The notes under the pieces are model-generated. The model was not told where the DNA came from and searched no databases. It was given only the letters and a program-made list of their open reading frames with translations. A DNA stretch of 64,000 bases from Piromyces finnis finn (taxonomy: Eukaryota; Fungi; Neocallimastigomycota): contig MCFH01000004.1 of NCBI GenBank assembly GCA_002104945.1, positions 930,001 to 994,000 on the forward strand, read 5' to 3'. Both the position numbers and the translations under genes were made by a program. The stretch's first letter is position 1. The number at the start of each line of letters is the position of its first letter. Shown one piece after another: positions 14,165-17,100 of this stretch.

Positions 14165-17100
14165 TTAGTAAAATTTCCAATTTGTATAATCAATTTTGAA
14201 TTTATCATTCGAAACTGTTTTAATAGAATCATTCTTACAAATAAAACAATTTCTACATGTACAATTAGTCATATTTGTATTATCGTACTCTTTAGATCTG
14301 GTATTTCCTATTTCAAAAATTTTTTGAGTTTCATTGGAAGCAGGTGTAAACATATCATAAAACACCTTTAATGATTGATAATAATTATTTTTATTAATAT
14401 GGTTTTCTATATAATGTAAACCTTTTTTATATTCCTTTTCATTATAAATATTATTTTCTTTTGTCTGAATTTCATTTTTGGATTCATTATTATATGAAAA
14501 TTTGTCCAGTATCATAGAATCATCATCATTGCAATTATTAATATTCTCATCTAATAGGGTATTTACATTATTTGCATTATTACTGCTATACTGCTCATTC
14601 AAAGTTAAATGCTTTTCTTTTATTACATTAATTTCATCATATTTATTATTGTGATTCTTTTTTATAGATATTGGTAATAATTCATTTGATTTTACACAAG
14701 TATCATTTTCATGATGAATAGATATGCATTTTTCATTTTCAGTAATATTACCAAAATCAAATTCATCCATAATATTATTTTTAATTTTATTTTCATTTTC
14801 ATTTTCATTTTCATTTATTAATATATTTTTAACAATATTATCTTCTAAAGATTTTGAATACTTGTTTAATTCTTTATTATTAGTTATTACAGGTCGTTTT
14901 GTTTTTTTTGATGAATTGTTATTGTCATTTAACTCAATATTATAACTTTTATCAGTAGAATCAATATGACTTTTTTCTTGACTATATTTATTTTTTGTGG
15001 CATTTTCAATAATAATCTCACTATTATTAGAATTAATCTCGCTTTTATTTTTTTTATTTAAAGTATCTTTATTATTGCTATTATTAGTATCTTTAATTAT
15101 TAAATTATTATTATTATTATTATTATTATTATTATTATTATTATTATTATTATTATTATTATTATTATTATTATTATTATTATTATTATTATTATTATTA
15201 TTATTATTATTATTATTATTATTATTATTATTATTATTATTATTATTATTATTATTAACTTTTACTTTCTTTATTAGGTTATTAGAAATTAAAAAGTCAT
15301 TCATATCAATATTTTTAAAATTAGTAAATAAAGTACTTCTTTTATCTATATTTTCAACATTATGAGGATTAATTAAAGAATCGTTTTGTGTTGATATTTC
15401 AGTTTTCCTTTTATTATCTAAATTAATTTCGGAGTTATTAACATTATAAATAATGTCATTCTTTTCATTCTTAATGATATCAATATTAATTATGGAACTA
15501 TTTATAATTAATTCATCCTTTTTATTTTCACTTGAATTATGATTTATCGTTGAATTCTTAACTAACAATTTATTATCACATTTATCTTCAGTAGGAGTAT
15601 TTACTATATTACAATCATTTTTATTATTCTTATTAATTATCTCATTCTTATCTGTCTTATTATTCGTATTATCCTTTAATAAATTATTATCATTTTTTTC
15701 ATTTTCTTCCTTTGTACTGCTTAATTCAAATTTATCTTCATTAATACTATTATTTTTTATTATTCCAATTTTATTATTTTCTGTTGTTTGTTTGATTTCT
15801 TCTTTTATTATACTATTTTCGTTTTTATTCTTTTCTTTATCGCTTATTAATTTCTTTAGTATATTAAAATCATTAAAGTGTTTTTCTTTTACTTCAATAT
15901 TTTCATGATCATCATTCAAAAATATTTTTTCCATTACATCAGTATTTGATTTAATTTCTTTAAATTGAATTTGTTTATTATTAGAATAATCATTGTTATA
16001 ATTATTATTATTTATTGGTTGTCCATTGGTTGTTTTATTGGTATTAACATTATTAACGTTTGAAGTTGGGTTATTTTGAGATTTTATGGGTGAACTTACA
16101 CTTGATGAAATATTAATTAATGAATTTTCTTTTATGCTATTTGCTCTTGATTCATTTAATTTATTATTATGTTGTAAAGTAAAGATTTGGTTTAGTTTTT
16201 TAGATGCTTCCGCATATCTTCTTTCAGGATTATTACTTTCAAAATTTTTATTGAAACTAGAATAATTCTTCGTTTCATTTATAATTTTTGGGTGGTTTTT
16301 TAATGACTTATTATCAATAAATAAATTACTTTTTATAAATGATAATGGAGAACTAGACTTATTTTGTCTTATAAAGTTTCTACTACTTAATGGTGATAAT
16401 CCACTTTGATTAAGAAGGCTAGAAGAATACTTTGAAAATATGGTATGTTTATTTTGCTTAGAAGGAGGAGATAAGGAAGCAAAAAATGAAGAAACATCAT
16501 CTGTTCTTTTTGGAGATCTAATAGGTATTTTTTTCGTTTGGGGTATACTTGGTATAACTTTGATATCAATATTGGTATTGAATGAAACTGATTTTTTCTT
16601 ATAACTTTCCGAAGTACTTTTTTTTAAAATACTTGTAGGTTTTATAGGTGTTCTATTAGGGCTATTTACATTTACTTTTTTATGTAAAGATTGGTTATTA
16701 CCCTTTTCATTTACTTTATCTATTTCTATATTATTTACTATATCATTTTTATTTTGGTCTTTCGATAAATTATGATGTTCTAACTTGTTTTTTTCATTAA
16801 AATCATTAGTATTATTAATTTCATATTTTTTAGTATTAAGGTTATCATTTTTGTCTTTAATAGGAAATATATTTTGATTTTCAGGTTGAACTACAGCTTT
16901 AAAATCTTGTTCTTTATTATTGTCATTAATTGATTCAGCCAACGAATTACTATTATTAATAATTTTTTCTTGTACAGGTGATTTATTTATATTCTTTTCT
17001 TGTTCATTAATTCTTGTAAAAGATTCATTAATTTTAGTATTATTTTCTTGAATTTTCTTCTTTTTCTCTTGTATTCTTTTTTGATAAAGTCTAAAGCCAT

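Follow-up and report, generated by a model that had tools for sequence, protein, structure and literature searches.

A conserved SILK and RVxF motif cluster, a candidate PP1 dock, in a TPP1-family protein of the fungus Piromyces finnis

The gene and its OB domain

The window analyzed here is a stretch of 64,000 nucleotides of the genome of Piromyces finnis, an anaerobic gut fungus, with a composition of about 18% G+C. On its reverse strand, at 14165..20829, it holds the gene BCR36DRAFT_409041, for which we present a model of 12 exons with the ATG at 20829 and the stop codon at 14165. Exons 1-6 lie at 20829-20683, 20477-20350, 20211-19992, 19882-19853, 19768-19696, and 19617-19565, and exons 7-12 at 19468-19173, 19075-18893, 18804-18727, 18629-18531, 18424-18350, and 18254-14165, all on the reverse strand. 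All 11 introns have GT-AG ends, lengths of 78-205 nt, and fitting phases, and there is no internal stop in the model, which encodes a protein of 1823 aa when the poly-Asn tracts are read through. The large last exon includes the open reading frame at 14165..18115 (reverse strand), which is 100% identical to part of the public hypothetical protein BCR36DRAFT_409041 (P0001, 1691 aa).

Throughout, we compare this gene with a single ortholog, P0002, the only one found to include the region of interest. It is encoded on an 8047-nt ENA metagenome contig (L001), and what we report as conservation of that region is one pairwise comparison. A tblastn search of the contig finds the exons of the OB domain, the small middle exons, and the large exon in the same order and on the same strand. 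Conservation is seen in the exon peptides, and stops abound in the introns.

At three places the public model departs from ours: it retains intron 5, and it splices out two poly-Asn tracts. Intron 5 (19618-19695, reverse strand) is read through in the public protein as 26 residues (GIYILSINC...). Given the GT-AG ends of this intron, and the several stops present in the homologous stretch of the ortholog contig, the public protein is wrong here. The two poly-Asn tracts are in the large exon, at ~17220-17350 and ~15130-15330 (reverse strand). In the ortholog, the read-through open reading frame conserves the residues beside the first tract, so this annotated "intron" is probably coding. The same exon also has a Lys/Asn-rich low-complexity coding region at 17616-17652.

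Exons 1-3 (19992..20829, reverse strand; residues 1-165) encode a predicted OB domain of the TPP1/ACD/Est3 type. Residues 5-157 match the Pfam family PF10341 (TPP1/ACD) with an E-value of 7e-15 and a score of 55.6 bits (cutoff 26.5), covering positions 1-147 of the 158 in the profile. The assignment to the TPP1 family comes from this Pfam profile alone, with a score well above threshold, and it makes the protein a probable member of the family. Sequence searches of solved structures (PDB) with the OB region did not reach TPP1. They gave only weak matches to uS12, a different OB protein. For the same region, AlphaFold2 gave a model with a pLDDT of 37, too poor for use. The rest of the protein has no match to any Pfam or NCBIfam family.

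The motif cluster and its conservation

In the large exon, within the open reading frame at 14165..18115, there is a pair of putative PP1-docking motifs in the peptide NSPNRTPIKPT-SILK-KSTSESYKK-KSVSF-NTNIDIKVIPS..IRSPKR, encoded on the reverse strand as are all its parts listed here. The N-terminal member of the pair is a SILK motif ([GS]IL[KR]), read from the sequence at 16622..16633 (ORF residues 495-498). After a spacer of nine residues comes KSVSF, a motif of the RVxF class, at 16580..16594 (ORF residues 508-512), with two extra lysines ahead of it. Seven residues past the F of KSVSF there is a hydrophobic pair, VI, at 16553..16558, which is a candidate PhiPhi motif. Sites of the CDK type (S/T-P-x-K/R) are found on both sides: SPNR (16652-16663) and TPIK (16640-16651) are just upstream of SILK, and SPKR (16505..16516) is 22 residues downstream of KSVSF. 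The annotated protein has four such sites, three of which flank the cassette. The SILK, the KSVSF, and the flanking CDK-type sites had been reported in the original prediction; we find the two motifs at the coordinates it gave, and the peptide is exact.

The strict form of the RVxF pattern is [HKR][ACHKMNQRSTV]V[CHKNQRST][FW], and KSVSF satisfies it as well as the looser form [KR]x(0-1)[VI]{P}[FW]. Basic residues (KK) precede the motif, and an acidic residue is found downstream of it in both species. In PP1 regulators, the PhiPhi motif is located 5-8 residues after the RVxF motif. The RVxF consensus and the rule for its flanks have been described (PMC6406801, PMC3792071), as has the rule on order by which SILK is N-terminal to RVxF (PMC3792071).

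The cassette sits within a conserved island of ~125 residues (16286..16663, reverse strand; residues 485-610 of the large open reading frame), and no other strongly conserved stretch of the large exon is as long. Compared with the one ortholog, the island has 72% amino-acid identity and a dN/dS of 0.15 at a dS of 0.97; the dN/dS falls to 0.10 in the core that runs from SPNR to SPKR. The variable parts of the large exon are 32-33% identical with dN/dS of 0.66-0.90, while the synonymous divergence is ~0.9-1 per site throughout the exon. Even the exons of the OB domain, 51-58% identical by tblastn, are less conserved than the island. AlphaFold2, run on a two-sequence alignment, models the motifs as coil and predicts helices just downstream of the motif part of the island. 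The model has a pLDDT of 57.5 and a pTM of 0.18, values that leave a folded domain unsupported and would fit disorder, although the low pLDDT may stem from the two-sequence alignment instead.

At the level of residues, TPIKPTSILKKS and KKKSVSF are unchanged in the ortholog, and the linkers STSESY and NTNID have been replaced. The hydrophobic pair is VI in P. finnis and II in the ortholog. As for the CDK-type sites, TPIK is kept, SPKR has become SPKK, and SPNR is lost (SVNV). Around the cassette, 18 of 50 codons differ only synonymously. There are synonymous changes at the L of SILK (TTA to TTG) and at the V, S, and F of KSVSF, which tells us that it is the amino acids that are kept. Each of the two proteins has one SILK, the cassette copy. 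The annotated P. finnis protein has three RVxF-like matches (KSVSF, KVNF, and KQIQF), of which KVNF and KQIQF are not conserved, and the cassette KSVSF is the only RVxF match in the 1379 residues of the ortholog, which serves as an internal control.

The conservation extends well past the motifs. A core of 75 residues is uniformly conserved, and the motifs do not rise clearly above their neighbors; the probability that the nine motif residues are all unchanged at ~75% identity is p ~0.08. Two other segments of the island, IPSIPQTKK and SFFASLS, are equally invariant and fall outside any PP1 motif. Their invariance fits an extended PP1 footprint, and it fits another partner equally well. The original prediction had proposed that motifs unconserved in orthologs would speak against it, and in the single ortholog available we find them conserved. 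From this pattern of substitution, we take the cassette to be a real cluster of short linear motifs that selection maintains.

How often would such a cluster arise by composition? Shuffling the whole protein produces an ordered SILK-RVxF pair, 5-40 residues apart, in 0.4% of shuffles. Shuffling the island only produces the ordered pair in 0.1%, and in 0.01-0.02% if either the strict RVxF or the hydrophobic pair is added. A six-frame stop-free translation of the window (~29,800 residues) contains 4 SILK, 60 loose RVxF, and 5 strict RVxF matches, and one ordered SILK-RVxF pair, which is the cassette itself. By our own arithmetic, extrapolating these window rates to a proteome of ~6-7 million residues, we would expect ~60 loose and ~5 strict pairs by chance. 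Thus, the pattern alone is not significant genome-wide, and it is because of its conservation in the ortholog that we take the cassette to be more than chance. The genome is rich in K, S, I, L, and F, which makes SILK-like and RVxF-like matches common. The same caution applies to very AT-rich genomes at large, in which composition makes such motif patterns common and it takes conservation to sort candidates from noise.

We searched widely for further relatives. A profile of the island, run against 1.84 billion representative proteins, reports only the ortholog already described and an unrelated repeat protein (P0003). Word searches using the island, the C-terminal domain, or the OB region recover either the P. 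finnis protein and its ortholog only, or nothing. A scan of JGI metagenomes with the island has no match, and neither the collections of viral and prokaryotic genomes nor the ESM Atlas yielded a relative. A scan of the JGI metagenomes with the C-terminal domain found one contig of 1735 nt (L002), which ends short of the island. The absence of any other relative of the island in 1.84 billion proteins implies either that the clade is narrow, or that the evolution of the island is too fast to trace.

Known PP1 docks and a possible role at telomeres

Judged by its sequence, the cassette appears nearest to the N-terminus of KNL1 in form, and nearest to Rif1 in setting. Like KNL1/Spc105, it has a SILK followed by a basic-flanked RVxF with a Ser at the x position, and then a hydrophobic pair; there are kinase sites in and around the motifs, and the context may be disordered as well. 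The KNL1 dock reads RVSF-ADTIK-VF, where the P. finnis one reads KSVSF-NTNIDIK-VI. The KNL1 motifs and the Aurora B switch have been described (PMC2845083, PMC6406801). There are also differences. The cassette is ~1000 residues into the P. finnis protein, whereas the KNL1 dock is N-terminal; the spacer is 9 residues instead of the ~30 in KNL1; and the host here has a TPP1 OB domain. A search for MELT-like repeats (M[ED][ILVM][ST]) has no match in either the annotated protein or its ortholog. As there is no Pfam match to Spc7/KNL1 either, we reject the identity of the protein as KNL1/Spc105/Spc7.

The RVxF motif of yeast Rif1 is KSVAF, which is close to KSVSF. Rif1 is also a telomere-associated protein that targets PP1 by means of a SILK and an RVxF motif, paired at a variable distance (PMC3410773), and in budding yeast the recruitment of PP1 restrains telomere extension (PMC5934629). 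In contrast with Rif1, the host described here is of another protein family and would act elsewhere in the telomere complex. It is not Rif1 either, as no piece of the protein has a HEAT-repeat or Rif1_N Pfam match at E-values up to 10.

The features shared with TPP1/ACD/Tpz1/Est3 proteins are an N-terminal OB domain with a match to almost all of the family profile, and a long C-terminal extension with conserved blocks that are candidates for partner binding. Known members of the family have ~500 residues, and this one has ~1800; the regions that bind POT1 and TIN2/Poz1 are not recognizable in it. The original prediction had called the host TPP1-like, and the PF10341 score of more than twice the cutoff agrees with that. 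It also knew of no TPP1 or Tpz1 with such a cassette, and our literature search turned up no paper that connects TPP1/Tpz1 with an RVxF motif or a PP1 dock. Its description of an undescribed system was overstated: this would be a docking cassette of the standard kind, carried by a new host protein. In terms of sequence, it looks like a known kind of module in a new place, and a credible, if unproven, candidate for a PP1 dock.

Does the cassette in this TPP1-family protein dock the PP1 catalytic subunit? We give this reading, the likeliest of those considered, close to an even chance, somewhat short of it. Binding is read from motif grammar only, and from the sequence we also infer telomere localization, phospho-regulation, and substrates. 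The island may instead be a conserved surface or regulatory region for another partner, such as a telomere subunit, an importin, or a kinase, with the motif matches a coincidence, which we consider possible but rather doubtful. The entire stretch from TPIK to SFFASLS is conserved, including the two segments that are outside the PP1 motifs, as such a region would have it; but extended conservation is also expected of a real PP1 dock. The contact of a PP1 regulator with PP1 typically spans 40-70 residues. The helices predicted just downstream of the motifs would also suit another partner; on the other side, invariant cores joined by variable linkers are what linear motifs usually look like. A coincidence is made easier by the composition-driven matches so frequent in the P. 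finnis genome, and there is precedent in LAP1B, which has conserved-looking matches to SILK and RVxF that do not bind PP1 (PMC3792071). Against coincidence, the ordered pair is rare in shuffles of the island composition, and its strict forms are rarer still, at the rates given above.

Least probable of all, we think, is a functionless match conserved merely because the two species are close. The comparison has one sequence, and low-complexity proteins align permissively. However, a dS of ~1 per site is combined with the low identity and high dN/dS seen outside the islands; the introns of the ortholog carry stops; and conservation in the island exceeds that of the OB domain recognized by Pfam. 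On these sequence grounds, a functionless chance match is already disfavored. A different question is whether the cassette belongs to the TPP1-like protein at all. The large exon could be a separate gene, or the product of an isoform starting at the Met of MIDETEK (18115), unjoined to the TPP1 OB domain, in which case the dock could be real yet unrelated to telomeres. In both species, that Met is the very point at which strong conservation sets in, and the proposed donors at 19172 and 18530 overlap an in-frame TAA, so that read-through would end the protein; besides, the annotated model already holds one clear error, the retained intron. We nevertheless find a separate gene or isoform unlikely. 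Exons 8-11 are conserved as protein without a start codon of their own, with splice phases kept in both species, and the public annotation likewise joins the exons. In particular, one gene is favored by the absence of an own start codon in exons 8-10 together with the 46 codons from the acceptor at 18254 to the Met, all of them open; at 18% G+C, we estimate one stop per ~10 codons by chance. In both species, the best reading joins the OB exons and the large exon in a single gene.

If the cassette does dock PP1, the V and F of KSVSF would enter the RVxF groove of PP1, the lysines before KSVSF would meet the acidic rim, SILK would fill the neighboring SILK groove, and the VI pair would make the PhiPhi contact, extending the strand. 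The docked PP1 would be placed at the single-strand end of the telomere complex, because the same polypeptide begins with a TPP1-type OB domain. PP1 located there could undo the phosphorylation of telomere proteins by CDK or checkpoint kinases. Phosphorylation of the cassette itself, at TPIK, at SPK[RK], and at the serines of KSVSF, would be positioned to switch docking off, as in KNL1 and Rif1. We propose, as a tentative scenario, that in anaerobic gut fungi of the Piromyces lineage TPP1, a subunit of the telomere end-binding complex, gained a SILK-RVxF-PhiPhi dock in the style of KNL1/Rif1, with CDK sites as its gate, and that PP1 would thereby reach the telomerase-recruiting subunit directly, in place of or in addition to delivery through Rif1. 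That a TPP1-family protein would have taken over a Rif1-like role, as the original prediction had it, is speculation.

The kinases that govern telomerase recruitment via TPP1, Tpz1-Ccq1, and Cdc13 are well studied. The phosphatases opposing them are known in part, namely Rif1-PP1 and Ssu72 (PMC5934629, PMC6443209). If our reading is true, this protein would be a natural case of a phosphatase delivered directly to the telomerase-recruiting subunit, and weaker or cryptic PP1 docks in other members of the TPP1 family would be worth testing. The practical reach is limited because the cassette is so far known from a single narrow lineage of fungi, in which manipulation is difficult.

Other conserved blocks and neighboring sequence

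Besides the OB domain and the island, the protein has conserved blocks that match no family, some past the OB fold (exons 4-7) and some at the C-terminal end. In exon 7 (19173-19468, reverse strand), a run of 14 residues, LFNSQSIFEIVDFK, is identical in both species, and there is a second block, KKSEKRYRDV. These blocks of exon 7 adjoin the OB domain on its downstream side, which is where TPP1 proteins bind POT1.

The C-terminal domain (14168..14434, reverse strand) comprises ~90 residues; it has a CxCxxCxxC cluster of cysteines, and its ending, IDY[TS]NWKFY, is invariant. It is 69% identical to that of the ortholog, with a dN/dS of 0.20, and 47-48% identical to the more distant sequence on the 1735-nt JGI contig (at 1453-1725), so this domain is conserved in three taxa. 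It has no Pfam or NCBIfam match, and it could be a partner-binding end of the TPP1-like protein. Positions 1-207 of the same contig hold the end of an unrelated open reading frame containing Gly and Cys (..YCHCSKCCGK..), which is either a neighboring gene or the result of a chimeric assembly.

Downstream of the P. finnis gene, on the forward strand at 13328-13762, a neighboring open reading frame of 144 aa has two W...P segments resembling WW domains, with an acidic Asp/Asn-rich linker between them.
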